From Kudoa neothunni (taxonomy: Eukaryota; Animalia; Cnidaria): a stretch of 64,000 nt of DNA. Shown one piece after another: positions 1 through 62,165 of this stretch. The position numbers and the translations under genes are program-made. Location: assembly GCA_964304625.1 (NCBI GenBank), contig OZ199838.1:10547817-10611816 (forward strand). Direction: 5' to 3'. How positions within the stretch are numbered: the stretch's first letter is position 1; every line of letters begins with the position of its first letter. The notes below the pieces were generated by a model, which had not been told where the DNA came from, made no database searches, and saw only the letters and a list, made by a program, of their open reading frames with translations.

Positions 1-1579
1 ATACGTGCAAGTAGATATTATATCCGAAAATTCAACAAAATCGTCGGATATTGGAACAGTAACAATATATTTTTTCGTGAATTCCTAAAAAATTAATATT
101 CAAACTACTTTAAAATAACATACATCTTTTAAATCATTTAATAATCGAGGTAGCAATGTCCCAGTGTTAACATAGCGGTGTGCTGTAGCTGTAATAACAT
201 GCACGCTCTTCCTGATTATTTTCTAAGGTGTGCATATAATGTGCAACTGAACATCAAAAACGTACGGAATAATATTGATAAATATTGTTTAGTTGAGTTA
301 CCATGGTAAGGTAAGTCTGATATTTTTCCAAATAATATGCCAGCGTTCGAAGATCTGTATTATACTAACGGAATTGGGATTGTACACATGCACAATAAAA
401 ATGCAATAATACGGCATTATTATGAATTATTATGTCATTTGAATCGCAGGAAAATTTTTTAGTTTTGGTCAGCACTGACAACTATATTAATCAAAATAGA
501 TTTTGGAAATGATTTCAAATTAATGTACTGGTTCATTCTCAAAAACTTGAATTGTATTAGTTATAACGACGATGTGTTTACGAATGTGAAATTGGTCACC
601 TCCAAAATGTTGCTTAAATAATCGTTTAATATTTGCACAAACGCCCATATCGATACTTGATTGCATATCATGGTTGATAATATTGAATCAAATATTTCAC
701 GAGAATATCCTACATTTTTTTCCATTTTCAGGAACAGATGTCCCTACAATGTTATCACATTGAGTTCACATCAAAACGCAAATACTGCCGTGGTATGAGA
801 AGCCAAACTTTCAAATGTCCCGACATATTTTTGTCTATAATTGATTAATTTTGAAAGAATGAAATTCAAATCATTTAACTGTGTAGTTCCGTATATTAAA
901 CCAAGGTTAATACTTGTGAATGCACTTTTGAAACCTGCGCCTTGAACTTTTTATATAAAATAATTATTCATGTAAATAATAACTTGTTTACATTTAATTT
1001 TTAATTGTTCCTCTAAATATATTATGGCTGGGTGTACATAATTTGTAATATCAGCTATGAAAAAAATCTGTGTCTCTTGGTTGTGGCTGTCACTTAGAGG
1101 AATCTCAAGAACAGTATTTATCTCTAATAGCTGCAGAATTATTTTTATTTTTAAAAAGCAATAACACTTGTATTAATATCTGTGTTATGTATTCTTGTGT
1201 CGTCTTCTACAGTCACCCCGGAGGATTTATCTTCCAATAAGTTCTATTTTATGGATAAACACGCTCTAACGACACAATTGATTACATCAGCAGGTGCTTT
1301 GGACATGTAAAGGATCCCACAACTTGTAAAAGTAACTTGCTTAGGAATACATCGATCTACATCTCGGTAACCCTTTAACATTGGTAATCTTAGTAAGTCT
1401 CAAAGCAACTACTGCATCAGAACACCAACGATTATTGTCAGATATGCATCGACGACATTGGTCTTCCAATGTTTGTTGAGTGATACGTGCGACTATAAAT
1501 GTATGAAATTTTTCCGATATACAAACCAACAAATACAATAATTGAGCCCGAATATTACAGCCAGTGAGTGAACTATCAT
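1..1579 (-). CDS. Divergent integrin beta-like protein, copy 1 (multi-exon, runs off the window start)
   Basis: Hand splicing of ~12 GT-AG introns of 35-50 nt from ATG 1579 gives a signal peptide (MIVHSLAVIFGLNYF), PSI-like QCRRCISDNNRWCSD..RC..SC, and a betaI-like domain (QETQIFFIADITNY; SINLGLIYGTT; SREIFDSILSTMICNQ; RKHIVVITNT). This aligns collinearly with integrin beta motifs YPVDLYYLMDLSYS, NFRLGFGSF, PEGGFDAIMQVAVC, RLLVFSTDA. The track ORF 1341..1538 is exon 2 read through its flanking introns. Confidence 0.75.
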
Positions 1580-2072
1580 TTCAATACCTTACTTAATTCG
1601 TTATCAAAGTGAATATCATATTTTATAACAATAATAATCGGATACATTATACTATTGAGTGAAAAATGAGACCATTAATCGGCGTTTTCGCCAAATTTTG
1701 AGCCAAAAATCGATGAATTGATCGAATATTTAGACAGATAAATAAATGCCAAATTTTTCTAATATTAAAACAGAATTTTTTTGTTTCACATTCTCCCTCC
1801 GTAAAATAATTATCTTTCTCATCTTCTAATATGAATTTAAATAATTTAGACCTCTCAAGTTATTTTGAATTAATTCTCATCAGCATATTAAAAGCAGATA
1901 GTCAATTATAAAAAGTGATAGATGCAAACACCTACGTAATATTTAAGATGTACTGAGTATTCGACCTCCTTATCAACAGTTCCCACTAACCATTAACAAC
2001 TACGAATCAAAACCTAAATTACGAAAATTAAATATGTACAATCGAAGATTTTATTTGATTAGATAATCTACG

Positions 2073-2159
2073 TGTAGTGCGTTGCCGAGAAAACGACACT
2101 GCTTAAGTTTTAAACACTAAAACGAATGTCTGCGAAAACCGAGTTATGGCGATGCTTCA
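2073..2159. mobile_element. 87-bp TG...CA insertion (solo-LTR/TRIM-like) upstream of copy 1
   Basis: Absent from the paralogous site (8222 ctacg). Flanked by ctacg (2068-2072) and ttacg (2160-2164). Starts TGTAG and ends TTCA. Confidence 0.5.
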
Positions 2160-3082
2160 TTACGAATGGTAAATAAGTTAGGTTTGATCGTGGTAAGTGG
2201 TTATTATATACGAATATTATTCGCACTGACGTGGTTTTGAATAAGACTAACTTTATCTGATGCATATGAATGTAATAATAGATCAGAATTGATCAAATAC
2301 GTAAGATTCATAAACAGTAATCTCTGATAACAACATATAATTGTGAGATATTAGGGCCAAAAATGAAAATAGCGTATACTTGCCGCAAAGTTAGGGTTAA
2401 TATTATCGTGAAAATTTCCTTTGATTTTATTTTAAAAAATGCTCACCTAAAGCATTGTGATCAAGTCATAATTAAGCTATTCCTATAGTATATTACTACA
2501 GATCATTTCTTATTCTTAAAGATTAATATAACATCCAAAAATAGTTAGATCTTGGAAATATTTAAAATTTATAACAAAATGATTTAAAAAATCAAACTTC
2601 TCATAAATTCACTTTCAATATAAAAATTTTTTGATGTAACACAGAAGAGCAGATGACAGATGTTCCAAATTGAGATTATAGTTGGATCGAAAATGAATCT
2701 TATTATATTAATTGAAAGTAACTTTTGACGCGGTAAATAATATTCAGGTCTCATTAGTTTGAACTATACCTAATTATTTATAACCCACCGCTTCGCACTC
2801 AAAAGTCAGAATTAATTAAATATAGAAGATTCTAAGAAGAATAAATTTGTATACAGCTTGTGAGTAAGAGATTCTGTGATTAAAATTCCTAAAGCGTATG
2901 CCTACATGCCTTTAAGATCAAAACTTATCGTGCGAATAGCCTCTGCCTTTGAGTAATTGCGTCTTTATAAATATTTAAAACAAAAATTTCGTGCGACATT
3001 AGCTTATTTATCTATATGATTTGTTAAATTTTATTGCAACAAAAATTCAACAAGGAATAAAAGAAGACTGGAAGCCTGTTTT

Positions 3083-3107
3083 ATAATAATAATAATAATA
3101 ATAATAA
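3083..3107. repeat. (AAT)n microsatellite
   Basis: About 8 perfect TAA units. Confidence 0.9.
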
Positions 3108-3519
3108 CAGCTAAAGAATAATTGATTCTCTAATAAAATAGTATCTTAAGGATTGAGTGTATTCTTGGTTATACATATAACATAATATCAATATTTTTTT
3201 AAATGTAATGTGGTTTATATTACAAAAAAACAATCATCTTTTTAAAGGCGGTCCTTACATTATTTAGAAAATTAGTATTTTATCTAGCGATTATACGATA
3301 GAATACTCTTCTTTATCGTATGGATTTTGTGATTTTCTTTAGAAACAAAGACTAACTTTTTTAGAACAGGTCAAAAATTTTTTTATGATTTCGTTAACAT
3401 TGAGAAAGCGTCTGCAACAATTCCAACAAATATGAGCATGTACCATTATATGATATCAATATCGGTGATTACAGAAATTTGTAGTACTCGCACATGTTTG
3501 AAGTTATGAAATATAGTGT

Positions 3520-5222
3520 CAGGGCATCCCTAGTTTGGACTTAATTACTGTATTAGGAATGAAAACCCCCGAATGTCTGTCGTTTTTAAAAATCCTTCGA
3601 AATGAATTAAATGAAATCATCAACCCTTAAATAACATTTGTAATCTTTACATCCCGCCCATTCATTTGATGGCGAAATCGTATTTAAAAAAAAGGAAATC
3701 ATGTATAGAGCTCCAAGTACAGTGCCGGAATTTGATTTCACACAGGAGAAATCAGTAACTACAGCATCTTATTTAGTAGCGCAACGTATAACAAAAACAA
3801 AGAAACATACGGCATTGCTAAAAGTTGATTATACATCGCGCCCTAGACATAGTTGAACTTGTATGTGTAGACGAAGCAAAACAGAATCTTCCAATTGTTC
3901 TACTCTCAAAAGACACCATTAATAGACGCATTTCTGAAATGTATCGACTATTTGTGAACAAATAACTGATTAGATTAGATTCAACAAAACAAGAATCCCT
4001 TTAAAATTGGATGAGTTCTATGATTTAACCAATTTTCTCAACCTATTGTTTTTTCTCGTTACGTTTGTTGAACTATGCCGAAAATTAATGACATTTATGT
4101 TAACATTTAACAAGAACCATTAAAGCCGTTAGTAAAATGAAAAAATGGAAGATTTTTTCAAAGGCACGACTTTTCGTGAGAAATGGTTGGATCAGTATGT
4201 ACAGATGGAGCCCGAATTATGATAGGAGCGAAGCGAAAAGCACCACATATAATGACAATGCATTTCATTATTCATAGATATGCTTTAACCCCAAAAACTC
4301 TTCCAGGTGAGTAAAAAATTGTCATGTGAAAAGTTTTCAAAGTTGTAAACTTCATTAGAACGAGATCATTAGGTTATCGTGTGTTCAAAGCGTTTGATTG
4401 GGAAATGGAGTTCGGGCATCCTGTTTTCTTACTTGTAACTGAGATAACGTGGTTTTGTTATGGATCGGGTTTGGGCCGCGTGTTTGAGGTTCTTACTGAA
4501 GTAGAGATTTTTTTCCACGACCGTAATTCAAAGCTTGACAAGGACTTTTCTGATCCTACTTTTATCGCCTACACAGCATATCTAACCGATATATTCAGTC
4601 GATATAATCAAGTCAACAAATGGCTTCAAGGAACTTGGATAACCGTTGTTGTAGTGCGTAAGAAAATGGTAGCTTTCTAGACAAATCTAGATTTGTGGGC
4701 AAGATGGATTTATCAAAAAAATTTTCGAAATTTGGAAAAGTCCATTAATGAAAGGTGTGATACATAAATCTTAGATAAACGAAAGTATGTGGACTATTTG
4801 AAAATCTTAAGGGGTCATTTTCTTTATTAACTATTTGTTTAATGACGTGATTCCGACAGAGAGATGAATTTTGAATCCCTTTGCTTTTCAGCTATATGAA
4901 ATAAACGATAACGACCCAACTAAGGATGAATTTATGGATATTTAATCGTCCGTTCCTCTTAAAGAAAAATTTGAGAGGGTTGATGTTTATTTTTTTGTAA
5001 ATTTTTGATAATCTTTTCCTTACTTTACCCAGCGGACCTATCAAATGATTATTCCCTTTGCGCTCACGTGCTTATGTGAATAAAGATTCTCAACGTTAGT
5101 ATAAATAATGACAAATCAGGAACAGTTAGAACACAATTGATAATATGAGACTAGCAATCATATCCACAGATCCTCTAATAAGCAAACTGATTGATTCGAA
5201 GAATCATTAATGTTCCCATTAA
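3520..5222 (+). pseudogene. hAT (Buster/Charlie, ZBED8/SCAND3-like) transposase, decayed
   Basis: Fragments TASYLVAQRITKTKKH, LLSKDTINRRISEM, VCTDGARIMIG, HFIIHRYAL, LGRVFEVLTEVEIFF, AYLTDIFSRYNQVNKWLQG and a C-terminal CSH*. Many stops and frameshifts. Confidence 0.88.
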
Positions 5223-5845
5223 TGGTATCCTTAGTGCTTTGAATATTTTTGATATTTTTCAAAATAATTGACTGTGTAATTTTGATTTAAAAATTTGTTT
5301 TTGTATACTGGATATGAAGATAAATTGTTTTATTTATTGATTGATTGATTTGTGTAACTATATTTAAAAAAATCAAACGTTTTTTATCAATGGTTTTATC
5401 CTAAGCATAAAGATGCGTATGCTCCACAGTGTATTATTTAGCTTAACTAGTACAAAACCTTAAGGTAAATATGAATTTAATAGCCAAGTTAAGGGGTTAA
5501 ATTTTTAAAAAATGGGTGAGAAGCTCTAAGGTATAGAAAGCGAATTGCCCAAGTCAAATAAGGAGACTTTGGCTATTAAAATTACTTTTTTGAGATTTTA
5601 ATAGTTTATCTATTAACAACAAAAGTTTCATAAGATTATAGCTATGAAAATTGATTATTTAATAAATTGTAAGGTGCCTTAAATTCCCAAAATATTGTAT
5701 AAACAGCGAAAATGACTCAGCATATAGCCAATGAATCAATAATAAACGTTATCTAGGCTTCCATGTGGATCAAAGAATAAGAATCAATATAATTCTTAGG
5801 AGTTGCGAGCGATTATTATATGGATAGAGTTTAGTCTTAATGTAA

Positions 5846-7726
5846 TCAAATTACGTATGAATTATGAGTATGGTTTTCACATTCACAAGAGCACAAATCT
5901 TGAGTGAGGAGGAATTGATAATTTTTCCCAAATACTGAAACTTCATATCTTGATGAATATAGAAAAATGTTAGAAAAAAAATTATACCTTCTTTCTATAG
6001 TTTCTGTGAGTGAGCATTTTCTAACTTCTAATGAGACCAAAATGGTTGCAGTAGAATTATGATCACATCGTAAATATAAACGTGAAACCCTAAAAAATTG
6101 TTCAGAAGGTACTTAAGTTTATGGTAGCAATGCCTGCAGCTAGACGATGTAAATGAAAATTCTACAAAATCGTTAGATAATGGAAAAACGAGAATATGTT
6201 CGTTCGTGCATGTCTTAAAAAAATTAGTTGAACTACTATAAAAAACCATACATCTTTAAAATAATCCAATAATTCAGATAAAAGTTTATTTGGTCTTTGG
6301 TTAGAATAACGGAATACTCTCGCTGGGATAACATACTTGCTGCCATCCAATACTTCCTAAGGCGCGCATAAAATGTGCAATTAAACCCCACCAAACATAC
6401 GTCATAATATTGTAATAGTTCTCTTGATTGAGTCATTATATAAACTACAGTCTGATATTTTACCAAATAATATCCCAATGTTTTGCGATCCATATGATAC
6501 TAATAGAATTGGAATTGCTCATATGTACAATAAATAAAAGCAATAATACGGCATTATTATGAACTATTTCATTATTTGAATTACAAGAAAATGTTCTAGT
6601 TTTAATCAACATTGACAACTATTTTAATCAAAATAGATTTAAAACGTGAATTTAAATAAATGTACCAGTTCATTATCCAAATATTGTATTGTATTAGTTA
6701 AAAGAACGATGTATTTACGAATGTGAATTTTGTCATGCCCAAAATGTCCCTTAAAGGATCAATAACAACCTACAGAAACCCCCATATTAATACTGGGTTG
6801 CATATCATAGTTGATAGGAGTGAATCAAATATTTCACGAGAATACATGTTTGTAGTTTTTCTCATCTGCAAAAATAGACGTTGCTATAATGTTATCACAT
6901 TGAGTTCACATCAAAATGAAAATACTGAAGCGGTATGAGAAGCCAAACTTTGAAATGCTCCAACATAATTTTTTCTATAATCGATTTATTTTGTAAGAAA
7001 GAAATAAAAATAATTTAACTGTGTAGTTTTGTATATTAAACCAATTTTAATACTTCCAAATGCACTTTGGAAATCTACGTCTTGAACTTTTTTTATATAA
7101 AATATACTTATTTACTTAAATAATAACTTATTTACGTTTAATATTTAATTGTTCTACCGTATATTCTATTGTGGAATCCAAATAGTTTGTAATATCCACA
7201 ATGAAAAAAACATGTTTCTCCTGATTGTTATTTGGAGAAATTTCAATACTAGTATTTATCTCTAATAACCGCGGAATTATTTTTATTTTTAAAGAGCATT
7301 AATACTTTTATTAATGGGTGGGTTATGTATTTTTGTTTCTCCTTCTACAATAAGTCTTGGGGACTGATCTTTAAATAAGTTCTATTTTATGAATAGATGT
7401 GCTCGAACCACAAAATTGTTTACATCAATCGGTGCTCTTGGCATGTGAATGTTCCCACAACTTGCGAAAGGAACCCCTTTAAGAATACATCTATCTTCCT
7501 TTTGGTAATCCTTTAACATCGGTATATAGTCTAATAATTCTAAAAGCAACTACTGCATCAGAACACCAGCGATTATTGTCAGATATGCATCGACGACATT
7601 GGTCATCCAATGTTTGCTGACCCTGACAGCCACAGACTACCATCATTGTAAGAAATTTATCCAACATACAAACAAATAAATACAATAAATGAGTACAAAT
7701 ATTGCGACCATTAAGTGAACCATCAT
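5846..7726 (-). CDS. Divergent integrin beta-like protein, copy 2 (signal-PSI-hybrid-betaI-hybrid; no EGF/TM exons found)
   Basis: ATG 7726, ~13 short introns at positions homologous to copy 1. Spliced product includes MMVHLMVAIFVLIYF, QCRRCISDNNRWCSD, KHVFFIVDITNY, SREIFDSLLSTMICNP, RKTLGYYLVKYQTVVYIMTQ, LVSLEVRKC and QDLCSCECE (cf. integrin beta 'C.C.CE'). The 3' end beyond ~5855 is uncertain. Confidence 0.75.
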
Positions 7727-8379
7727 TTCAATACCAAACTTAATTATTTACCAAATTTAATATTGAATGTTGTAATAATAATCGGATACATTATATTACT
7801 GGGTGAAAAATGAGGTCATTCACCTGTTTTCACATTTGTTGAGTCCCAAATTGATGAGTTGATCGAATTTTTAGGCAGTAAAATAAATTCAAATCACTAG
7901 TATTGAACTATTATTTTTTTGGTTAATTTTCCTGTGGAGAAATAATTCTTACTGACCTTTTAATATGTATTTAAATTATTTAAATTTATTGGGTTATTTT
8001 AAATTAATTCATATTTGCATGTTAAACGCAGTTATATATCCATAAACTCAGAGAGTTAATTACAAAAAGTGATGGATACAAACACCTATGTAATATTTAA
8101 GCTGAACTGTGTATTCGATTTCCTTATCAACGGTTCACATCAATTATTGACAACTACTAATCCGAACCTAAATTACGAAAATTAAATAGGTACATTCGAG
8201 GATTTTATTTGATTGAATAATCTACGAATGGGAAATAAGTTAGGTTTGATCGTGGGAAGTGGTAATTACATACGAATACTATTCAGATAGATGTAGTTTC
8301 GAATAAGGCTGACTTTAATTGATATATAAAAATATAACAATAGATCATAATTGATCAACTACGTTAGATTCATGAACAA

Positions 8380-10711: not shown

Positions 10712-12909
10712 GGTTCCCCTATTTTTTGCGTTTATTCACGATGTTTTTCGTCGAAAATGGTTCTAAAAAATCTTATATGGTCTTTTCATCTGGAATGTAT
10801 CAAAAGTTTTTCCAAATTTTTTAAAATAAATTTTTCTTCTAATCGCGTATATGACGGCGAAGTCAACAACATAATCCTCATGTTAAACACTGGTTTCTAT
10901 ATTTCACTACGAAAGAATATGGATGTGACTACAATTTATGCATTTAAAAGTTTATTTTACGTTTGTATTTTATTATAAAGAATAAAAAATTACAATAAAT
11001 CATTATAAACGGTTGTTGTTCAGATATGTAGAATATTGAAATTTTCTTCGCATTCACAACAATTTCTCATTTACATTTTCGCTTAATTAAACAAAATAAC
11101 CACTATTGTTATTATTATAAATCTTTCCATTTAAAACTCTTTATCGTTTAAGGCAATTACTGAATGTTATTTGGTAAATTTCCCCCTAATCTTGACTCTA
11201 AGAAGTGATTATTAACTAGAAAATATATGAGAAACTAATTTAATAATTCTTAAGAATATTTAAAAATGAAAACAATCCTCAGAAATGAATTTTCTTTTAT
11301 GGAAAATAACTCATAAAAAATAAACATAATTACACGATATTTTTGTATAATTTTTTTATTGTTTGATCAGTTGTTAACATCGAATTATTTTTCATTATCT
11401 AAATATATTATATTAATATTTTATTTATATATCTTTTTATATTTCATTTTTTTAATTAAATTTCATATTTTGGCTATTAAAATATTACAGTTCAAGGTAG
11501 GCTCTATTTCTTGATATTTATTATTCGGATCAAACCATTTCACTTATTATAGCTGAAAAATAATTCTAATAACTTCAAAAAGTTTCCGATGAATGATCAC
11601 AAGAACATAATATTCACCTTCTCTTAAGATTGTCATTTTGATTATATTCGACTGCCAGTGCACATAATACACTTATCAGATGGTGGCTTTTGTGTCAGTT
11701 ATAAAACAAGCAGTTGGTTTTCATTTTGTAGAAATTGCTTTTATTGACCCAATGGCTGAAAATCTCAGCGCACGGACAGATTTATACCCTCGAGAACGGT
11801 TATGAATTACTTCATAATTATCCCTAATTCAATAAAAATCTAGCTTAGTGTATCATTTATCATTTAAAAGTACTATTTTTAAAACCACAACAACATGAAT
11901 ATAATTCATTGAAATAATATAAGACAAATATTGAGCATAAGAGGGTATAATAAGTTACAAAGTTGCATTGTTATACAGCATTACGATCCCTTGTTTTCTA
12001 TCACCTTCTCAGTATATATTTATCGATAAAAAAAATTTGTTGCCATTATTTCACTGCAAATAAGGAGGAGAGAAAGCACCAACATGTCTCGGGGAAAAAT
12101 TAATCCCACTTTGTATTGATAAAGAAAATATACTGATTCCTATTTTAAAAATGAATTTTAAAATAACAACAAATTAAGAACATTTAGTTTGAGTTTTGTT
12201 TGTTATAAACGAAATATTAATATTCGACATCATTAGCATATAATAATTAATTTAATACTATATTCATCAAACTCTTTATTTTAAATTTTAAAAAAATAAA
12301 ATATGTAGTTAAAATCGAATTTGAACTTAAATTTGAATCAAAGAAACGTTACAATATTATTTTATGTTTTAGTTAATGTAATTAAAACCTTACCTCAATA
12401 TTTATCTTTCTTTGTTACAATAAAAATCAAGAATATGAAGAAAAAAGAAATTAAATAAGAAAATATATTACATTTAATGGAGAATTAAAAATGGATGTTG
12501 AAAATTGATAAATAAAATAAACATTGTGCTTTAATTAGAATAAAATAAAAATGAGAAATTGTTGTGAATGCGAAGAAAATTTCAATATTCTACATATCTG
12601 AACAACAACCGTTTATAATGATTTATTGTAATTTTTTATTCTTTATAATAAAATACAAACGTAAAATAAACTTTTAAATGCATAAATTGTAATCACATCC
12701 ATATTCTTTCGTAGTGAAATATAGAAACCAGTGTTTAACATGAGGATTATGTTGTTGACTTCGTCGTCATATACGCGATTAGAAGAAAAATTTATTTTAA
12801 AAAATTTGGAAAAACTTTTGATACATTCCAGATGAAAAGACCTTATAAGATTTTTTAGAACCATTTTTGACGAAAAACATCGCGTAAAAACGCAAAAAAT
12901 AGGGGAGCC
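10712..12909. mobile_element. Non-autonomous element with ~360-bp terminal inverted repeats (foldback/MULE-like)
   Basis: 10712..~11072 is the near-perfect reverse complement of ~12549..12909. No transposase recognised inside; no clear TSD. Confidence 0.85.
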
Positions 12910-16635: not shown

Positions 16636-19600
16636 TTAGATACTTACTTTAGCTGGAATGTAAACTTGATCACATTTTTGATATAATAATTTATCTTTAT
16701 GTTTCTGACGAATATTTCTAATTATGTATATTCCAATTACAATGATCATGATAAATGACAGGAAAATAATGAAATTGATTATATCTAAGGTTTTTATATC
16801 ATTGATCCGACCTTGGACAATTTCATGATATTCAGTTGCATTTGTTGTACGGAATTCTTTGGTGGATTCCATAATCACGACTGGATTGTCTAAGTTTCCT
16901 AGTTTCGGTTGTTTTAGGTTAAAAATCTTTTGGACCACAACAGCATTCTTTTCTTTTTTCTCGATCAAAAATGTGAGCATTACTTCAATAGATTTTAAAT
17001 CTAGTGGAATCTCTTTCATCCTTTCGGAAAATTCTAGGCCACACGATACGTCGGAATTTAATTCATATGCTGTCACTTCAAATGCTGTATTTTCATTTTG
17101 GGAAATAAATTCGTTTGCTAATTGTTTTTTAGTCTCTGAATCCGCGAAGAATTTTTCGGAGAGTTCTTCCAAACTTGAGCTAACGAGTTCCTCATTTATA
17201 TGGTTTACATCATGGAGATGATGGTTTATTTGTCGCATTATTATATTATTCTGAGCCATTATTTTGATTTTTTCGTCGAGATAATGGTGATTTCCACTCG
17301 AAAAATTTGTAGTTAATGTTTTTTCTAATTCCTCATATTTAGATTTGATATCATCGTTCAGTTTGTTATTTTTTTTAATTATTTTTAACCAATCTAGTGA
17401 TAGGTCAATTTTGGCATTGTTAGCAGTTGACTGAAGTTGGCTAGCTTTTTCAAAGTATTTATTTAGTGGTTCAAGTTCTTTTTCAACATTTGATTTTATC
17501 AATACCAATTTAGCATTTTTGGAGTTAGTTAGAATATTCATTTCGGATTCAATCCAATCAACTTTTCCTTGATATTTTGAAGATAATAGTTCTTGCAACG
17601 AAATTAGTTGTTTCTTTAGTTCGTCAAATATTCCAAATGTGTCATTGATATGCTTTGATTTTTCCCCCATTTGTTTTAGAATTTCCAACAGTGTGTCTTT
17701 TTTGTCTTTATTTTTTGCAAGCACTTTCTCAAATTCTACTATTTGGAATGAAGCATTCATTAAAATCTTATCAATATTAATTTTTGTTTGTTTCGCATAA
17801 TTTTTTCCATTTATTAAGACGGCAGTAATTGGATATATTTCGAGATATTTTTGGTCCAGTTTTTTCTGAACATCGGTCAAATAAATTTCAAATTCATTTT
17901 TTCCATTTAAATTGTTGTCATTTACCGAATCAGTTATCCGATTTTGTAGCGATTTTACCTCGTCTTTAAGAGAGCTATAAGTATTTTCGGCACTAACTAT
18001 AGTTCTTTGAAACGCATGGATTTCGCTGGTTAATTTTATTATAGCTTGTTTATGAAAATCATTAAAACTTTTATTCGCATTCAAATCATCAGAATATTTT
18101 GCTAATGTGGTTGATGCGGAGGGTGTTTTATTGACTTCCCGTATAATCTGGCTATTTTTGCTATTCTCTGTAATAGATTTCTCCTGTGAAGCAGCAAATT
18201 TTGATCCGCTAATGAAAATTTCCTCAGAATCAGCGCAAACCTCTTGATGAGCGGCAATCTTTGCGCTGTACTGATCAAGCAGATCTCTCAAAATGTTGTT
18301 CAATTTGTTGATATCACTGATATTATTATCCACCGATTCATTGTATAAGCTCATTTTAGATTCAACTACTGAGTTTATGACGTCCGCAATTTTAACTTTT
18401 CGTTTTTGAAATTGTGTTTTGAATGAGTTCTGCATTCTATCATAAATATCAGCAATGGAAGGTATTGTATTTTTTAGGGAGTTCATCTGGCCAACACCAA
18501 ATATATCACCTGTTGGAAGTTTTCCCCTTTCAAGTGACTCCAAAAATCGGGATTTTAAGTCGTTAAATGAAGCGGTTTCATCTTCATTACTATATGTGTC
18601 GATCAGATCTTCACACTCTTTGGTAGTTTGTATAATTGAATGTTCACAATTTTCCCCATTTATCACATTTTGACAACATCCAAATTTAGATTTATAACTT
18701 GTAAGTTTATTATATATGTTGATCGAATCAGCTGATATCGATTCTTTTAAGTTTGAGAGTACAGCTAATGATCTTTCCTTCATTTCTAATGAAGCAGTTT
18801 TAAATTTATCACAATGAGTTTCCAATGCGTTGAGTTGATCTTTGATATTTCTAATATTAATCTTGTGTTCCTCGTTTAGATCATTGTCGAATAATCCATA
18901 AAGCTGGGATAACGTATCAACTTTTTCTAAAAGTTTTGTTCTCATATCCGTAGTGCTAGTTTTTTCACGTTCTAACAAACGAATGTTTGTGTCAGTAGTA
19001 GTCCTTATTTCAGACTTCAATGATTCCACTTGGTTTGGAAAATTTTTATTGAATCCGTCGACCTCACTTGCAAGTCGTCTCAACAAATGTGAAATTCCTT
19101 CATGCTTATCAAACCACCTCGTAGAATTGCTTAGATAACTATCTAACTCCTTATTTTTTTTATTAACATTAACTACTTTAGACTCAGAATTGTCTTTATT
19201 CGCTGACAAATTTTGAACAGTAGACACCATTAGTGATTTATATATGGAATAATCCTCGCTGTTCTTTCTTATTTGTTTGTTTTTTTCAACTAACAACGGT
19301 AGTTTGATTTTTAATCCATCTAATTTATCTTTTCTTCCTTTTTCAAAGTCGGAGTATTGATTATTCCAATCATCTTCAGGAAGATCCCATGTGTTGTTTA
19401 ATTGGCTGGCATAATCTTTAATTAATGCACTGATTTCATCTTTCATTTGAGTGGCTTCTAGTTTATTTGAATCGAAACTCTGTTTGGTCTCAGTTGTTAA
19501 TGCAAAATTAGCATCTATCAAACTCAAGTTATTATCAATTTCTTTCTTGATTTGTTCGACTTCACTAATAGAATTAGGGAACGAATTGTAAAATTTATTA

Positions 19601-22600
19601 ATCACCGAGTCGAAATTTATTTTTGGATATTTGCCCTTATGACCATTATAAAAGGCGATCTCTTCTGTTATTGAAGCACTGAGCGCTTGATAAGTTTGAG
19701 TGTTTGGCTTATTTACATCCTCCAAAATCAATTTGTTGATCATTGAATATTCCTCTTCAAAAGAGTTTAAAATTTTTTGAATCTCAATATCATCAAATTT
19801 AACTTTGTACTTTTCAATATAACGTGTTTTCAGTTCCTCCTTGTAAGTCTCAATCAGTTTGTTTGAATTTTGATTAATGTCATCAATATTTTTTATAGGC
19901 TCATTGTAATCTACATTATTGAGATTTAAATTGGAAATTTCTTGGGTGATACGCTGTAGTGACTCCAGCACTTCAGCGTTTTTTTTCTTTTGGTTCTCAA
20001 ATAATGTTTCCATTCCACCACATGAAGACATAAAAGATTCATAATTCTCATGCCCATCATTTTCGATAAGATTGAAAATGCATTTATTTATTGTTTTATT
20101 AAGAGTAGATAACAGATCCTTTTCAATTTCATATTCGTTTTTACCGCTATTTTTGTAATTTTTTAGTTGATTGAGAACAGTATTAGAGTTTGTTGAGAAT
20201 TTATCATTCAATTCTTTTAATTTTTTTGTAAAATTATCATATTCAGATAATTTCGTCGATAATTTTTCATCATACTCATCATTTCTAACATAATGTCTAC
20301 GAATGTATAAACTTTTGATGGCGTCAAAGTTATCACTTAATCTTGCTTTTTCTAATTCCGTTTTCTGTTTCTTTTCAGTATAATCATTGTTATCTCTATT
20401 AATAACACTTTTAAAATTTTCATTTTTGTTGTTTGAAGTATTATCCAGTGAAGCTTTCTTTTCGTTTGTTTTACTTATAAATAAATTAGTTTGAGAGCTT
20501 TTATCTCTCGCCATGTTTATCATACTTTCAAGGTTCTTATTTTTAGTTGTGACGTCCGCAATTGTAGTATCAACCGATCCAATGAATTCGTTTGCAGAAC
20601 TTTCAAATTCATCATATTTGGATTTTAATTGGTGATTGTCGGTAACGTATAGGTTATAAGAAGCCATTATAGTATTGGTGGTTTCACTGAGTTGAGCCTC
20701 ACTGGAAACTATCGAATCAGCATTCAATTTCAAATTTAATTTGCTTATTTCTTCATTTACTTTAATTTGAAATTCCTTGGGATGAATGGCCGTTTGCTTA
20801 GACAACAAATTTTTCACTCTTAATATGTTATTATATTCGTCCAAAATAACTTGACCGTTTCGCTTTAACGTTTCTATCTTTCCAAGATTTTCATTAATAG
20901 ATCTAATGCTCTCATCGATTTTTAGTTTAATTTGGCTAGAAGTAGACATAATTTCATTCATTTTATCAGTAACGGATTGGTATTTTTTGTGGATAGGACT
21001 GATAATAGATCGAGCCAGAGACCGCATAAATTTCGACTCATAATTTATCACAGATTTTTCAAATTGATCCAACTCAGTATTCTTTTCAGAAAGGAAGGAG
21101 AGTTTATTATTCCCTTCGGATTGTAATGTTGTTATTTTTGAATTTTCAAGGTCATGTTTTGATTGAGAGTCAGATAATATGAAATTTGTTTTATCCAATT
21201 TTTCATTCACAATCAAAATTGTTTCATTAGGATCCACAACAGTCATTTTCTTTTGAAGGTATTGTGAATTGATCTTTTTGACTGCATCAGGGATCTTAAC
21301 TCTTTTAATATTTATGATCTGTTGTTTTAAACTCGAGTAATCGTTCATAAAATTTGTAAATTCTTCCTTATCTTTTTTGAAATTATTAGCTAAGGTCGAC
21401 AGGAAGCTTTCCAAATCAGTTAGTTGTTTAGTCATAGTTTGGATATTGTCTTTATAATCTCTTTCATATTTTTCCTCCAACTGACTTTTATCCTTTTTAA
21501 GTGCAATTTCTTGTGACAAAACATTATTTAATTTATTGTGAACAATGGGTTTTGAAGTAATGCCGTTAAGGATTTCCTTAAACGTATTAACTTTGGTTTT
21601 TGCATCCTCAAAAAAACCTTTGGTTTCCAAAGCAGTTACATTAATCTCATCTAGTATAACTTGAGCGCTCGATTTTTCCTTTTCATGCGAAACAATTTGT
21701 GATTTCAACTGATCAAATTTAGTCATCAATGTGGTGTGTTTGTCCAAGGCACTCGATAACTCGTCGGTCATTTCTGACGGAATGTATCCGAGATACGATG
21801 ACAAAACTTCCGTAGAACTCTTGTAGAATGTGTTGGCTTCTTCTATGTTGAAGGTGGCGATTGAAACACTTTTCAATTGATTATGTTTGCTCATAAGGCT
21901 TTCGTGTTTTGCTATAATATTTAGACAGCTTTGCACATCGAACTTTTCATCCAGCTGATTTATTTTTTGAAAAATCTTCGCGTAATATCCATGAGCAGTT
22001 TTTGTGATATCATGGTTCATTGCAGAAATATAGCGATTTAATGATATATACAACGTATTGTACACCGATTTAAATGTATAGATGCAATCTGCATTATCTG
22101 TGATTTCCTTTTCGTAAAATAATATGTTTCTCTCAATTTCATTAATAGCATTAAGGCCGATGAGGTTAGCTTGTGGTGTAGCCATGGAAGAATTATTTAG
22201 GCAATTGTCAGAAGCTTCTATCATCACTTTCCTCGTGTCTTTATGACAGTTTTGTTGATTTTTATCCGTTGTAATCCTTGTTTGATGTTCTTTCCATTGT
22301 GTATGTCTGGGTTTTATCGTCGAAAAACAATTACTCATCTTCTTTACACCTGTCAAATGATTTTTTTTCCGCGTCACATCTGCTGCATATATTTTATTGT
22401 AGTCATCGGTGGATATATATGTATCAGCCTGACTAGGAAGCACCAATTCATAGAATTGTTTCACTTCACCACTCATAAAGTATTCTATGGATGTAGGGTC
22501 AATGTCGAGCCATATAAGTAATTCATTTAGCTTTTCTAACAAATCTTTAGCTTGAGATATTAGATTATCACATTTTTCTACATTAGCTTTCAATTTTTCT

Positions 22601-22757
22601 GTAGTAGAGCTCAACTCTAGGCAGATATCAGTTGAGGTAATTATTCTCCCCCATGATAAAACAAAAGCTACCACTAATATGAATTGAAAATAATGGTAAA
22701 TACTATTTATTAAGTAGTTATTGATTTACATGAAAAAATCTTTAGTTGATATTGCAT
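16636..22757 (-). CDS. Giant (~2020 aa) type I membrane protein with helical/coiled-coil ectodomain, unknown family
   Basis: Uninterrupted 6-kb ORF in AT-rich DNA. A 28-nt exon (ATG 22757..22730) plus a 56-nt GT-AG intron (22729..22674) gives the signal peptide MQYQLKIFSLVAFVLSWGRIITS. C-terminal TM IINFIIFLSFIMIIVIGIYII is followed by a basic stop-transfer and a ~27-aa tail. Confidence 0.9.
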
Positions 22758-30621: not shown

Positions 30622-32327
30622 TTAGGAGGCTTTTGTGGATAGATATAAGGCTGGTGCATCCTTGATGGCAATATCCAGATCATTTATCACTTTTTGTAGG
30701 ATTTTTTTCTCGTTAACAATGTAGTGTCGACAGTTGACAGAGATGTAGTTGTTGGATTTGACAGGTGGGAGTGAGTCTTCATTTACGTAACCGCTTAAAA
30801 TGAATTGCACATGAGTTTTCAATTGGTTTAATGATTTTAATTCGGTTTCTAATGAAAGGGCAATATTTCCATTAACTTTAGCTTTCAGATCTGGTCCCCA
30901 AACATTAGCAAGTTGTTGTTTTTCGTCAAGGGTGCAGTTCAGCAGGCGATAAATCAGTCTAAGGTCACCAGACCAGGCGTTAGAATACAAGCTCAGAGGA
31001 TGATGGAAAGAATCTTGAAGATCTGCAGCCGTAAGTAGATCCATTCGATTGGATATATCGGCTTTGGTGTTAAGACGATCAATGCTAACAACGAAGAAAT
31101 CGTTGGTGTTGTTTTCAAGGTAGAATCCATTGTATATGAATAAAAGTGAAGTGGGTCTCGCACCGTAAAAAATTCGCAGTTCGTCTCCACTTTGCAAATC
31201 ATTCGGGCACAAAACTCTACACAGACCACAATCTATATCAAAGTCCACAGAAAATATGGTGTCAGTGTGGTTGCATAAATCCATCACTGGTATAAGTCCG
31301 AGTGTGTGTTGGCCGCTTTTTGAGGAAGTAGGGATGGGATTCATTCGAGTCATCACAGTTGAGGCTGCCCAAAAATAATCCCGCAAATTAAATTTATCTT
31401 TCAGGTGATATTTTTTCACAAGCGCGCCGATCGGTTTGGAAGAAGATTCATTCTCGATAAATTTCATATGCAAATACACATATTGTCTCACACATGAAGT
31501 CCACAAACTTAAAGCATCCCAATACAATGGTGATCCTTTCAACGAAGCGAAATCATCGACCGAAAATTCACACACGTTGTTATAGGAAGATGGTAACGAA
31601 TCCAAATAGACTTTCCATGGAGAATCATTTTTCTTATAGCATTCAATTAGTAGTCCAAACGCCAGTAATATATTTGGCATAGTATTGAGCAGTGGATCAT
31701 TTTTAGCAACTTCTCCAATAGCTGAGTCTTTCATGAAATATTCTGCAGTTAAAATAAGGTTTTTAGGGATCTAAATCGACATTAATTTCATTCCAACTAT
31801 AATTCATATATACTTTGAGCACTTCTTCTCCTCTTTTCATGTTTTTTGTCACCTTCAACCCAAATCCCTCATTGTCTAACGATGAGCTCGATGTATGCTG
31901 CATAATATCGACACCTTGAAGATCTACAGCACCATTTCCCATCCAATCAAGTAACTGTTTTAACTAAATTATTTTTAAAATAAAAACAAGCACAGATATC
32001 TATCAATAGCAATATAATGAATGCTATTACTCGTTGATATCTATCAATACTCTTCAACCATGGAGTTATTGTTGGTTTAGCTGTGCATTTTTCAACCTCT
32101 GCCAACAACTTTCGAATCTTCAGGTGATATTCCATCAAATCATCTTCATTGGTGATGGTAGAAAATTGGCAGCATATTCGGAATATTTCCATTAGCTTTC
32201 CTTTCAAAGTAGGATCGGTTGCTTCATCCATGACAACCTGCGATAAGGTGGAACGCACAGTTTTAATTTTGTTGATAATGTTATTGATATTTTTTTGCGA
32301 AAGGTATTCAATTCCGTCCGAATTCAT
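30622..32327 (-). CDS. SETD3: SETD3-family (actin-histidine) methyltransferase
   Basis: Exons 32327..32031, 31963..31814 and 31770..30622. Motifs EGFGLKVT, SPWKVYLDSLP, RQYVYL, WAASTVMTRMN, LIPVMDLCNH, IFYGARP..YNGF and a Rubisco-LSMT-type C-terminal domain. The start codon is the first in-frame ATG. Confidence 0.88.
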
Positions 32328-32754: not shown

Positions 32755-35325
32755 ATGCCTCCTACAACACCTGGCGCAACCAATACTCATTATTATGGTT
32801 CAAATGAAATTGTTGACCATGTTGAGTTGGTTGCACGTATAAAAAAAGATCCTCTTTGTCATCAAGATAATTTTATCTCACAGTACAACCATTTTGAGCG
32901 ACTTTGCCAATTGTTGACTTTGGAACCTTCTTCAATGAACGAGAATCTGCTCCAGCTGATATCTTTTATTAGTACTGTACTCCACAATTACAAACAATAC
33001 ACTGAGAAATTTGTTAACAATTTGGTGACCCTCATAGAAAGTTATGGCTATGTAAAATGTGATATTTTCTTTTTATTATGTATATTGGTAAATTTAGCAA
33101 TTGGAATCCACAATTCGATTGGTTATTTGTAAGGTATTGTTGAAGCAACAACGACAAAACAATATTGAACCTCTGAAATTGTATCAAATATTAGTTGGCC
33201 TCTTCAATTGTAAAGATAAAATTCTGAGAAAATCGTTACAACATCTTATTATTACCAATATCCAAAACTCGAATCGAAAACACTACAACAATCGGATAAA
33301 TCTCTCTATTCAAGGCTATTTTTTCAAAATGTTACAACAAACCTCGACAATTAGCATTAGTGACAATGAGCCTATTATTTTGGCAATTCTTAACATAGTG
33401 ATATCACTATGGAGAAAAAAAGTTTGGACAAACGATAAAACAGTTAACATGATTAGTTATGTGTGCTTTAGTGAAAGTTACAAGGTGATTTTTGTGTTTA
33501 TTGAACACAGTTTTTCGCATAGCGTTTGTAAATCATTGGAACTCTTTTGTTCTTTATTAATTATGTTTTTGTGTTCTTTTTTACAAATGATCTTGCATTA
33601 TTATGTTCTTTTGTTGTTGATTATCTTATGCGTAATTTGTTTGGTTGTAGGTGAGCTTTACCGCCATCAAATTCTTCTTGGCTATTAACAACACCACAGA
33701 CAACGAAAACCAAAGCGACGATGAGTTGGATGATCCAAATGGCGATGAAGTCAAAAGAATGAACGCCCTGATGCTCATCAAAGCCAACAAATGTGACACC
33801 AAACCTACAATCTCAAGAACATCCCGAAAAAAAAAACGCAAACTCGATAAAGCGTTAGAATATATGGCCAACATTGAAAAAAAGAAAAAAGCACGGCGTG
33901 TGGATCAGTCGGTAGGAGATAGTTCCGCTATTCGTTTGTTGAACGATCCACAATCGTTTGCGTTGGATTTATTGAAAAAATTTTCTAAATCCAAAAACAG
34001 ATTCGAGATGAAATTAATGATCATTGAATTAGTTGCGCGTGTGATCAGTATTCATACACTTATTATTCCCAATTATTACACTATTGTGCAACGTTATTTG
34101 AGACCCCATCAAGAAAACGCTGTTCGCATCCTGACCGCTCTTGTTCAGTCATGCCACAAACTCGTACCAGATGAATACATTTGTGCGTGTATCAAGACTA
34201 TTGCTGCCAATTTCATCTCACAGCACTCCGCCTCAGAAATCGCCGCGGTTGGAATGAACACTATCAGAGAAATCTGCTGGAGATCTCCAACTGCCATTGA
34301 AGAGTCACTTGCTCAAGAACTCGTTTCCATGGAAAAGGGAATCAATGGTTCTAAGGGTATCGATAAGGTACTGGCAATAGCGTCCAAGTCATTATTACAA
34401 ACCCTGCGAGTTGTGAACCCGAAAGTGCTTTTGAGAAAAGATCGTGCTCGCCCCCTTCTACCAAAATCTCGTCAGCAGTTGATCGATTCTTTAAATGAAA
34501 CTGACGACCCTTTAAATGCGCTCGGGGGTCCTAAAACTCATACAACTATTCCAGGGTTAGAATATTACGATAATCTAGCTGATAATCAATTTGAAAATGA
34601 GTCACAAGATATGTCTGAAGATGATGAAGATAGTATTTTGGAGGATGATGAAGGTGAAGATGGTACTTTAGAGGAGGAGGAGGAGGAGGATGATGATGAT
34701 GAAGATAGTGTTGATATTGAGAGTGATGAATGTGAAAATATTTCGCTGACCGGTCAAACATTGAATAGCGAAGTGATGTGCTCACGGTTTCTTACTGATG
34801 AAGAATTTCGAATGATTCGACGCCAAAAAATGAAACAAGATGCAAAAAAATTGGCTGAAAGTTTAGGAAACAAAAAACACAAAGCATCCAACCTCGATGA
34901 TGACAACTCCAGTGATATTGACGACAATTCGATTCATCACGATGATATTATTGGAGTTGAGACAGTGGGTTTTGTTAGCGGATTGAAAAGGAAGCACACA
35001 AATCCTGATTTTGTATCATCATCCACTCAAAACTTTTCGACCAACAAAAAGACTCCCGATATGAGAAAACAAGCCAACGCTGAATTTCGTAGCAAAGTCT
35101 TCAATGATTGGAGATTCAACCCAAAGGCTAGCATAACTCAACGTGAAAAGAATAAATCCAAACCTTTCATGATGATCAAAAATAAACGACAGGTATTGTG
35201 TAATCCCTTCATATTTTATGTGTGAATATTTGATTTAGGTGAAAGGCAAAGTTAAGAAATCTATCAGAGATAAGATTGCCACACTTCGAAAAACAATAAA
35301 AAATGCCGGGAAAATTCGGCGTTAA
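32755..35325 (+). CDS. SDAD1: SDA1 homolog (60S biogenesis factor)
   Basis: Exons 32755..33051, 33098..33484, 33651..35192 and 35239..35325. Motifs IKKDPLCHQDNF, LFNCKDKILRK, LWRKKVWTNDKTVN, AIRLLNDPQSFA, YLRPHQE, AVGMNTIREIC, an acidic tract, RFLTDEEF and NKSKPFMM. Confidence 0.93.
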
Positions 35326-43734: not shown

Positions 43735-46700
43735 ATGTCTCAGCCTGTTCCAATCACGTTTACTGAAGTTTTACAGGTGATTTTTTTGGAAAAACTGTTT
43801 TCGATAAACCATATTTGAGTAGCTTCAAAAACTTGGCGTATCACCAACCAGTATTGGGTTTTCTACAGTGAGTTTACAGTCGGATAAGTGTGTTTGTGTT
43901 CGAGAGAAGACAGACGATAAAGCTAATGTTGTTATTTTTGATACATCCAATCCCTCAGCTGTGATCCGAAAACCTATCACAGCTGATTCTGCTATTATGA
44001 ACCCTGTTTCTAAAGTTATCGCACTTAAAGCTGGAAAAAATCTTCAACTATTCGATTTGGATAACAAACAGAAAGTTGCTGCTTTTGTTGTAGTTGATGA
44101 CGTCACTTTTTGGAAGTGGGTCACCAAAGATATCATTGCCTTCGTTTCTGGAGGGCATTTGTATCATTGGACCATATTGAGTAAGCATTATTTATTCTCC
44201 AACGTTACATATACTACTACCAATGGGAATTAGTGGGTAGTTTAATAATTAATAAGGGTTTTGTTTCTATTCGAGTTAATAGTTTGTTCTATTTCCTTTT
44301 AATTGTTATGGGCAATATATATATAATTGCAATGAAACTAGGTTATTTCGATTATTACTTGAGACGCCTGCGTTGTAACACAATCAATTTAACCATTAAT
44401 TCAAAAAGTAGTGATTCAATGTAGATTCCATTTGTAAATTTTTTTAATAGCACCCAGTGAATAAAAACTGACATATTTTCGACAGGTTACATTTAATTAT
44501 ACAGTTTTGTTGATACAAAGTTTGTAAGATTGTTTACCTTTAGTAATAGAATTAATTGATAATTAGCGACAATTAATCCTACTTTTCTTACCATGGTGCT
44601 TAGCGGCTATATCCTCGATTTTTATGAGAATTACGCTCATGTGTGATCTTTGATTATTAAAACCATATGTTTCACTGTAAATGCTATCCAATTTTTAACT
44701 TCATTCTTTATATCAATTTTCTCCTATATTTTCTGGAGGTTTGGCATTGGAGAGATTTCTGTTGTAAGCTCTGCTTAGCGTAAACTTCGAAGTTGATCGA
44801 ACATACAGTGCACAGCTCGTTTAATTTTTTATTTTCTCCTACTAAAATTTTAACTCCCATAATTACGATATATTATTTTTAGCTGATTTATTTCAGAGAA
44901 AAATTGTTAGTAAAATATAAATCCTGATAATATTTGATAAAAATTTCATTTGTGACATTCTTAGCTAAAATCTACCCTATTGACATGGTCGCTTTTCGTC
45001 GGAGAAATGATGTTTCGCATTTTATGGCGTAATTTGATACGGCCTAATTTTGTTTGTATAACGTAGTAGTATTTTCCCGTCAATGATTTTAATTTTTATG
45101 CGTTTTTTGATTTTTAACAAAAAATATACATTTCCTAGAATATTTATTTACTAAATTTAAAATACGATTTTTCGGGCTTTGTCGTGAATTATATTCGTTG
45201 ATATGGTGATTATGATCCTGAATGAAGCTCCTATTGAATTTAAGGTCAAAAACTTAATATATCCTTAATCAGTAAATGTAGCATATATTTTTCAGTTTCA
45301 TTACTTTATTTTTACGGAATACTTTTTACATTTGAGTTCTTCAAGAAAAGCCCATTAGGTGTCATAATTTTAGATTTTAGTACTTATTCATTCAGGGTGT
45401 TGGTAATTTCTTTAGAAACAATGGGAGCTCAGTCTGCAATGTTTTTCTTCATATCGTCTCCTAGTATTATAGCCAGTTTACTGTTATAAAAGATGACGTA
45501 ATAGTCCCTTCTGGTTATAAGCTAATATATAATTGAGTTTTTTGCCAAAATACATGCATCTTATATACATTTCATTGGAGATAAATAAACGGTTCCATGT
45601 GAAGAAAAACAATACGTAGATATCGGATTAACTTATTATTCTAAGTCAGCTTGAATAATTTTTTTGCTTTGTTTACTAATAACATCTAAATATTATTTAC
45701 AGCGCTAATATCCACTTTCTACTAATATTAGGGATTGCGTTATGAGAAGTTGATTAATGCATTCACACCCACTCTTATTTTGGGTTGACTAATATTGTTG
45801 TAGACGATGGAGAAACAAAATCTCCAGAGAAAATTTTCCAGTTGCATTCCTCACTCTCACAAGCACAAATAATCAACTATCATGTTGACGCTACACGCAA
45901 GTGGTGCGTTCTTATTGGCGTCAATGCAGTAAATGGAAAAATTGGAGGTGCTATGCAGTTGTTTTCGGTGGAAAGAAATGTTACACAACCTATTGCTGGT
46001 CATGCTGCCACTTTCGCCCAATATCAGTTGGGGGAGAATCCTTCACCTAGCAACCTTTTCATATTTGGAAACAGAGACGACAATGGAGCAAAAATACATA
46101 TCATCGAAGTGGGTGGTACACCCGCCGGCAACCAACCATTTTCTAAAAAGATTGGAGATATCTTTTTCCAACCGGACGCCGTCAACGATTTTCCTATTGC
46201 TCTACACGCTGACAATCAAAGTGGTGTGTTCTATCTACTCACCAAATCGGGCTTTATGTACATGTATGAGATTGAAACTGCCAGCTGTTTTTATGCCACC
46301 AAGATAAGTCAAGAAGTCCTCTTCGCCAGTGCCCCCACAAGCGGCCATGGATTTATGGCTATCAATCGACAAGGTACACTATTCGCTGTGAGAATCGATA
46401 AAGACAATATTGTGAACTATCTCAAGATGAAAGGATTGGATAGTCTGGCGTTCAAGATAATTGAAAGATGTGGACTGCCTGGATCGGAAGCCATCTATCT
46501 GAATCGATTCAATAATCTATTTGCTCAGGGCCAATATGAAGCGGCCGCTAAAGTGGCCGCAAAAGCACCAAATAATATCTTACGAACCTCAGATGTTATA
46601 AGACGTTTTCAAACTGCACCTACGGCTCCGGGAAGTGCATCACCGTTGCTGCATTATTTTGGGTGTCTGCTGGAGATGGGCACACTGAACAAAGATGAGA

Positions 46701-49700: not shown

Positions 49701-50402
49701 CAGTGACCGTAATCAACATGTTCAAAGTGGGAGACAATGTCTCGTTGATCAAAGGCTACTTGGAATTTTCACAAAAACAAGACTCTAAATACATAAATGA
49801 ACACCTCAATAAGCTCTACATTGAAGAGGGACAATATGAAGCGCTCATGATATCAGTCACCAAATACACAAACTTTGATATGATTAAGTTGGCAGAAGAA
49901 CTAGAAAGTCATGAGATGGTTGAGTTCCGCCGTGTGTCCAATTCCCTCTATAAACAATGCAATCGTTGGAACAAGTCGATAGAATTGGCCAAAAAAAGAT
50001 GGCCTCGATTCAGATGCTGCTATTTATGCCTCCGAATCTCGTGACCCTGTTCATGCTGTGGATCTTTTGATACATTTCACGTCAAACAAAATGCATGAAG
50101 CTACGATCAGTCTCCTTTACCACTGCTACGACCTTCTAAAACCTGATGATGTGCTAGAACATTGCTGGAAAAACAACATGGTTGATATGTGCATGCCATA
50201 CATTATTCAAATGTTGAGTGATGTGATTCCAAAGGTTAATGAGCTGGGCGGAAAAGTATTGGAAGAGGAAAAGGCCACCATCAAGGAACAACCTTCCATT
50301 CTATTGACAAATCCACTGATGTTGACTGGTGGACCCTCTTATTCATCCGCAATGGGCGGAAATCAGTTCAACATGCCCGGATCAGGCTTTCAGCGATTCT
50401 AA
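43735..50402 (+). CDS. CLTC: Clathrin heavy chain (one apparent +1 indel at 49991-49997)
   Basis: Exons 43735..43776, 43823..44180 and 45804..50402. Motifs RKPITADSAIMNP, GHAATF, ECSAELGD, LQTRLLEMNL, QRALEHYTDIYDIKR, LERTHMGIFTELA, YDLLKPDDVLE and LMLTGGP. Confidence 0.97.
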
Positions 50403-61999: not shown

Positions 62000-62165
62000 T
62001 GTTAGGGCAAGGAACCATCGTTCAATATAACAATAATAATATAGAGGCTAATATAAGGGTGTTTATATAGTTAGCGCCAACTGTATATTAATACACGTAG
62101 GTACCGACCAAGATAATGTGTGTCATTATACCTTTGACGTCAAAGACTAACTGTCAGCCCCAACA
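62000..62165 (-). repeat. 3' LTR of Gypsy element (166 bp)
   Basis: Minus strand TGTTGGGGC...GCCCTAACA inverted ends, immediately preceded by the polypurine tract GAAAGGGGGAATAG (62166-62179). Internal TATATAAA. Confidence 0.85.

Follow-up and report, generated by a model that had tools for sequence, protein, structure and literature searches.

Here we describe a clade of genes derived from integrin beta in the myxozoan Kudoa neothunni, two of which, designated copies A and B, lie at the left end of a 64,000-nucleotide stretch of the assembly GCA_964304625.1 (G000:C1:10547817-10611816), hereafter called the window. They are minus-strand paralogs, 6.14 kb apart and 76% identical in DNA. As judged from sequence, both are integrin betas by descent that fail the canonical ligand-binding motifs, and the loss of the predicted ligands of MIDAS (metal ion-dependent adhesion site), of the adjacent site (ADMIDAS) and of SyMBS (synergistic metal-binding site) is confirmed in both. 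The reading that we prefer, and to which we give about an even chance, is that the A/B clade consists of cation-independent, talin-uncoupled variable surface proteins, derived from integrin beta and expanded in Kudoa.

K. neothunni is a parasite of tuna muscle, and its genome was assembled from yellowfin tuna data, giving 40.2 Mb in three chromosomes, with an N50 of 12.0 Mb, a GC content of 30.4%, a median intron of 49 nt, 5,316 predicted proteins and nearly no RNA reads (PMC12239612). The assembly used here totals 40,260,978 bases, with three large contigs (17.15, 12.04 and 11.05 Mb) and a small one of 18.2 kb. Integrins are mentioned neither in the genome paper (PMC12239612) nor in the Sphaerospora genome preprint, and we found no paper on a MIDAS-less integrin beta family of K. 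neothunni. Exon models were built on the splice sites common to copies A and B, with splicing deduced from conserved structure; the spliced models were compared locally, and searches were run exon by exon.

Loss of the predicted metal ligands

The metal-site residues of integrin betas follow the scheme DXSXSXXDD (PMC6889490), of which copies A and B retain the first Asp alone, with Thr at position 3, Tyr at position 5 and the ADMIDAS pair lost. In both, the degenerate beta-MIDAS motif reads DITNY (1038..1052 in A and 7182..7196 in B; all exons and motifs of the two genes are on the minus strand), and at ADMIDAS positions 8 and 9 copy A has Pro and Ala, copy B Ser and Thr. Glu220, which serves MIDAS and SyMBS alike (PMC3792891), is replaced by Arg within SREIFD (687..704 in A; 6824..6841 in B, 12 residues before the conserved betaI cysteine). 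At the Asp251-equivalent position stands Asn, in the motif ITNT in A (553..564) and LTNT in B (6690..6701). Copy C, a relative on chromosome 2, shows the same three replacements (DITNY, Arg and Asn). An earlier, sequence-only reading of the window had named DITNY for DxSxS, SREIFD for PEGGFD and (I/L)TNT for STDA, and all three hold at these positions in both copies.

That reading had also taken the deletion of the cysteine-bonded specificity-determining loop as a mark of repurposing, which is not supported. The loop is indeed short and lacks cysteines, but its cysteine pair is absent as well from L017, L018 and L019, Kudoa betas with an intact DxSxS, and copies A and B are only 6-16 residues shorter there. 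Because these three also lack the pair, loop shortening is a genome-wide trait and MIDAS loss is the clade-specific one; within the family, the loop of the divergent clade is the shortest. The ADMIDAS Asp pair is likewise lost in L019, and in L017 it is kept as Asp-Glu. L018 (L018:2600-5023; G000:C3:5.88 Mb), with its intact DxSxS and Thr at the Glu220 site, may show the loss of the metal site at an intermediate stage; past an intron of ~2 kb this gene seems to run on.

Descent from integrin beta

Two genes of the same genome are canonical betas: L019 (C1, 9.67 Mb) has 749 aa, DSSQS, four I-EGF modules, a membrane helix and NPLF, and L017 has DLSQS and NPLY. Over the head, L019, A and B agree in all 15 intron positions and in their phases; both copies have the full set of 13 head cysteines found in L019, which pair one for one with those of copy A. 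Identity of A and B to the canonical paralogs is ~20%. Against the canonical paralog head the local score is 111 for A and 120 for B, with shuffled maxima of 58 and 64, and against the canonical-paralog profile the E values are 4e-20 and 5e-9, respectively. Compared profile to profile, the divergent clade matches the canonical betas with a probability of 99.96 and E 2e-38.

The similarity of A and B to true betas is thus an indirect chain, running through the canonical-paralog profile and through L016, the frame of which matches PF00362 (E 6e-27) and the solved structures of beta7 (human), beta1 and beta3 (E 2e-20, for beta7, to 1e-11). Pfam had no match for single exons alone; word searching, whether the canonical betaI frame or the beta-tail alignment was the query, returned nothing, and neither did an Atlas search at a threshold of 0.9. 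L016 itself (L016:4360-6800; G000:C1:13.614-13.617 Mb) is a canonical beta copy with frameshifts that lacks many internal introns and keeps some terminal ones, which looks like recombination with cDNA.

The claim that two paralogs align collinearly with the PSI, hybrid and betaI domains is therefore upheld by the open heads, the shared introns and the head cysteines. The profile match proposed as a check on it was obtained with the clade profile but not with single exons against Pfam. Of the ~13 tiny introns that had been counted in each gene, the small size stands, but there are 14 per head, and the size is ordinary for a genome with a median of 49 nt (PMC12239612).

Copy A, a predicted full-length membrane protein whose leg is rebuilt

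Copy A is predicted to be a complete receptor. From its ATG at 1579, exons 1-7 (1579-1537, 1492-1413, 1372-1286, 1243-1168, 1123-992, 946-880 and 834-786) and exons 8-13 (743-657, 612-529, 481-413, 364-266, 222-124 and 84-5) span 5..1579, and the gene leaves the window in intron 13. Exons 14-15 lie directly left of it, giving a head of 15 exons and 417 codons without a stop, up to 276 bases left of the window. A scan for I-EGF1 located that exon 9.49 kb further left, behind an intron full of piggyBac-, Tc1- and hAT-like remnants, and with exons 16-20 (leg, membrane helix and tail; G000:C1:10538050-10537039) these five leg-side exons complete a model of 691 aa. Its order is PSI, hybrid, betaI, hybrid, I-EGF, beta-tail and membrane helix, of which copy B has the head only. 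The suggestion that the array continues left of the window is not supported, since that side holds the rest of gene A and no third tandem copy. A reading of copies A, B and C alike as secreted heads does not hold, since A and C have legs, located behind long introns.

The leg departs from the canonical set of four I-EGF modules: I-EGF1 is kept, a clade-specific, 82-residue cysteine module replaces I-EGF2-3, and a remnant of I-EGF4 and the beta-tail domain follow. In total, copy A has 35 cysteines and L019 has 50. Behind the single membrane helix is a tail of ~25 residues without NPxY, a motif present as NPxY/F in L017 and L019. The beta-tail exon 19, folded together with 11 paralogs, reached a predicted local distance difference test score (pLDDT) of 82. 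Among 48,161 chains the predicted tail-domain fold matched only the beta3 tail domain (Z 8.1, root-mean-square deviation 3.4, 81 residues aligned; next Z 4.4), and the top 17 Foldseek rows for the exon 19 model are integrin betas. Across nine paralogs, 13 columns of the cysteine module in the rebuilt leg are invariant; the module has no family match, and its predicted fold is not confident (pLDDT 47). A cockroach repeat protein, the sole match of the rebuilt-leg profile in a search of size 1.84 billion, was rejected as a cysteine-spacing artefact.

A divergent clade across the genome

A genome-wide count, proposed earlier as a check, revealed a family far larger than two genes. The I-EGF1 scan recovered ~28 loci, which with B makes ~29 beta loci, ~18 of them MIDAS-less and ~11 of canonical type; these counts are lower bounds, some loci having been read only in part. 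The divergent type comprises 17 legs and 18 heads, and 16 of their beta-tail exons were found by profile. In twelve further clade members, exons 6-16 join into an open frame, and the intron phases are the same. All 13 members read at the motif keep the first Asp and have lost the Ser of position 5, where Tyr, Phe, Lys, Pro, Val or Met occurs; in all 15 read at the Glu220 site that residue is changed, with Arg, Lys, His, Asn, Gln, Tyr or Asp instead and no common replacement. Among the divergent-clade tails read, none has NPxY within the membrane exon. In a midpoint-rooted tree of Kudoa sequences only, 15 divergent rows split from five DxS/TxS rows with support of 99/98.

A three-gene array, L039, L040 and L041, is located at G000:C3:9.387-9.409 Mb. 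There the L039 head differs from those of L040 and L041 (synonymous divergence, dS, ~0.42), while its leg is 97-100% identical to that of L041 from exon 15 onwards, introns included. On account of this mosaic, heads and legs can be said to have been exchanged near the boundary at which copy B is cut. The leg of L040 is broken by an insertion of ~2.2 kb. Copy C (L013:3740-8743; G000:C2:1.746-1.751 Mb) is the closest relative of A and is complete with its leg.

Between A and B, the ratio of nonsynonymous to synonymous divergence, dN/dS, is 0.63 (0.48-0.84; dN 0.29, dS 0.46), with 0.50 in the N-terminal part and 0.69 in betaI, and the lineage ratios lie between 0.50 and 0.78. Five exons differ in length between the two copies, every time by a multiple of three, and in a neutral simulation (substitutions only) at 0.1 changes per site the open frame was kept in 0 of 1000 runs. 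Exons differ more than introns (~26% versus ~21%), but this was rejected as proof of positive selection, dN being lower than dS. The A-B ratio is high for a receptor and below 1, and fits a mixture of constraint and fast change; positive selection is not proven. The earlier proposal of a repurposed, cation-independent family is thus supported as regards the loss of betaI metal ligands and the maintenance of the family (open frames, in-frame indels and the ratio of 0.63), and it underestimated the family, which is much larger than two.

The clathrin heavy chain gene of the window, used as a control, has only one close relative (69%) in public databases. These databases hold little from myxozoans, and blank searches therefore say little about other myxozoans.

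Copy B, a head without a leg

Copy B (5855..7726) is an integrin-beta-like, head-only gene with an ATG at 7726 and 418 aa open over 15 exons, namely exons 1-8 (7726-7684, 7636-7554, 7510-7424, 7381-7306, 7261-7136, 7086-7020, 6974-6926 and 6883-6794) and exons 9-15 (6749-6666, 6618-6550, 6499-6401, 6356-6252, 6213-6134, 6089-5988 and 5948-5855). They encode a signal peptide, PSI, hybrid, betaI and the C-terminal half of the hybrid domain. Its 14 introns within the head measure 38-50 nt; 13 are GT-AG and one, intron 13 (6133-6090, minus strand), is GC-AG, with GT in the same place in copies A and C. Independent unitigs from the source sample match the DNA of copy B at 5878-7599 without gaps or other letters.

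The start of intron 15 (5723..5854, minus strand) has a GT donor and an in-frame stop after two codons. Similarity between A and B begins ~650 bases upstream of the start and persists for ~130 bases of this intron, ending at 5723, which is the break point of the legless copy. The upstream region duplicated with copy B (7727..8378, minus strand; counterpart in A 1580-2316; blocks 78-89% identical) is likely to contain promoter and 5' untranslated region. The spacer from B to the promoter of A is occupied by an old, decayed hAT/Buster-like transposon remnant (3535..5528, plus strand; 69% identical to its best other copy) and a dispersed repeat. No hidden leg of copy B was found in 1580-5854 or upstream by tblastn, blastn or leg profiles, and B is the sole head without a nearby I-EGF1 among 22 exon-15 matches in the genome.

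Copy B is not young, because it branches outside A plus copy C (support 99/96) and dS between A and B is 0.46. At that divergence, and with no frame surviving the neutral simulation, an unselected frame would not have lasted; either the loss of the leg is therefore recent, or B functions as a secreted head, or it uses the leg of A. To judge by its frame, B spent most of its history as a functional paralog. As to its present state, we put about half of our weight on a recently cut pseudogene, clearly less on a secreted headpiece that would end two codons into intron 15, and least on an alternative head that would be spliced onto the leg of A.

An extended form of the last option, which we consider improbable, would make B a live promoter-plus-head cassette spliced across the head of A onto A's single leg (through a 15.6-kb intron), and the whole clade a receptor repertoire of integrin-beta origin, with variable heads on constant stalks and reshuffling at intron 15, akin to protocadherin clusters or parasite variant-antigen families. 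The clustered protocadherin and UGT1A loci use variable first exons, and tandem promoter-plus-head cassettes upstream of one membrane part would resemble the order B, A, leg. However, the single orphan head among 22 exon-15 matches in the Kudoa genome argues against a general cassette design.

Proposed function and alternative readings

If the A/B clade is indeed cation-independent and talin-uncoupled, the acidic residue of an RGD- or LDV-type ligand would, without a metal, have nothing to complete, and without NPxY, where talin and kindlin normally dock (PMC12516132), these two would lose their usual site. With the leg rebuilt, the bent-to-extended switch is probably lost, and a disulfide scaffold under constraint would hold a fast-changing head off the membrane. 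The top face of betaI may then offer a variable contact surface, independent of metal and carried on a stalk braced by disulfides, instead of working as a force-coupled switch, and ordinary matrix adhesion would be left to the canonical Kudoa betas. In view of the parasite's biology and of data from the myxozoan Ceratonova shasta, in which integrin beta and talin rise with virulence (PMC6843538), the most likely use would be at a host-parasite or cell-in-cell interface, as an adhesin or a variable coat.

Several observations weigh against this interpretation. The first Asp is invariant and several clade members keep the Asp251 site, so that a residual metal site is possible in some of them. 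A dN/dS below 1 fits relaxed constraint too. Copy C carries ~six frame-shifting single-base indels, which reflect either a pseudogene or low-coverage or assembly errors, and on this evidence turnover and decay do occur. Finally, 0 RNA reads from two metatranscriptome runs mapped to the genes, which is no test of expression.

The alternative that survives best, though we would give it only about one chance in four, is that an expanded set of divergent alphas needs the MIDAS-less betas as obligate partners for folding, trafficking and display, with specificity residing on the alpha propeller or a joint surface and a combinatorial repertoire of alpha and beta. The length of the alpha-facing loop is kept, as this would have it (exons 9-10: 84 + 69 nt against 84 + 72 nt in L019). 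On the other hand, A, B, C and the other clade members read have other residues in place of the Arg/Lys of the GDGR/K motif that docks into the alpha propeller, though so do the canonical L017 and L018; the specificity loop is at its shortest in just this clade; and no alpha gene was confirmed by integrin alpha family scans of the genome, which gave no match and are uninformative on alpha presence.

Birth-and-death drift, by which transposon-driven duplicates under relaxed selection would lose functional sites en route to becoming pseudogenes, is in our view unlikely. It could account for the overall ratio of 0.63 and its range among lineages, for the frameshifts of copy C and L016, for the missing leg of B and for the transposons inside and between the genes, but it sits poorly with a MIDAS loss that is ancestral to a deep clade (branches up to ~2 changes per site), with at least 14 members that keep open frames over exons 6-15 along with conserved splice sites and cysteines, and with the 13 invariant columns of the rebuilt leg. 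Less probable still is a rewired site of atypical metal-dependent integrins, one step beyond beta8, in which the first Asp (retained by all 13 members read), the Thr of position 3, a Glu one residue past the usual position and Asn251 would bind a cation with altered geometry: Thr can stand in for Ser and Asn can coordinate Ca (PMC6889490), but position 5 takes six different residues, the Glu220 site has no shared replacement, and an Arg there would compete with the cation.

Comparison with known systems

The Kudoa clade resembles Pactolus in being an integrin-beta-derived surface protein family with predicted loss of metal ligands. Pactolus (mouse Itgb2l, integrin beta-2-like protein) has a non-functional MIDAS that binds no metal, a reduced specificity loop, no alpha partner, and both membrane and truncated forms. 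Publications on it include Chen 1998 (PMID 9535848) and Sen and Legge 2007 (PMID 17523188), and its structure entry is PDB 2IUE. Whereas Pactolus is one rodent gene derived from beta2, the Kudoa family forms an independent clade, ~18 genes strong, in a parasitic cnidarian; its leg is rebuilt, and heads and legs are shuffled. The two are convergent and not orthologous, because the genes reside in a cnidarian and share their exon structure with Kudoa's own betas (the tree holds no Pactolus row).

Integrin beta8 similarly has no ADMIDAS, no talin linkage and little hybrid-domain swing-out, but it keeps its MIDAS and binds RGD with Mg (PMC6889490), whereas in the Kudoa clade the MIDAS serine and Glu220 are gone as well. 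Canonical cnidarian betas (Acropora AmItgb2 and Podocoryne IntB; PMC2397394), like L017 and L019, agree with the clade in domain order, intron positions and head cysteines, but DxSxS, four I-EGF modules and NPxY/F are all present in them, and NPxY is missing from copy A.

Other features of the window

Beside the A/B pair, a single open frame of 2012 aa (16636-22674, minus strand), helical and with a C-terminal membrane segment, encodes an orphan surface protein. A 380-nt inverted repeat (10712-11091 and 12530-12909), 96% complementary and 1.4 kb apart, is probably a transposon with long terminal repeats, and Gypsy-like retrotransposon RNase H and integrase frames occupy 62147-63959 (minus strand). 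The clathrin heavy chain gene (43868-50402, plus strand) is 69% identical to one public protein and 54% to others. We take 33101-35225 (plus strand) to be an SDA1-like gene and 30622-31734 (minus strand) a SET-domain-like gene; like clathrin, they are long, intron-poor frames, unlike the integrin genes. Elsewhere in the assembly, the 18.2-kb contig carries divergent cox1-like frames.

Conclusions

Humans have eight integrin beta genes, and to our knowledge Pactolus was the only metal-less betaI case before the Kudoa clade. The chemistry that defines integrin adhesion is that of the MIDAS, which even expanded invertebrate families have retained (Ciona, PMC1145181; corals, PMC2397394). With ~29 beta loci amid ~5,300 predicted proteins (PMC12239612), K. 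neothunni has invested scarce coding space in a rebuilt adhesion receptor. The clade provides named candidates for the little-known host-interface proteins of myxozoans, a group in which integrins have been proposed as drug targets (PMC6843538), and, with its many independent variants, it is a natural test of the betaI fold without metal.

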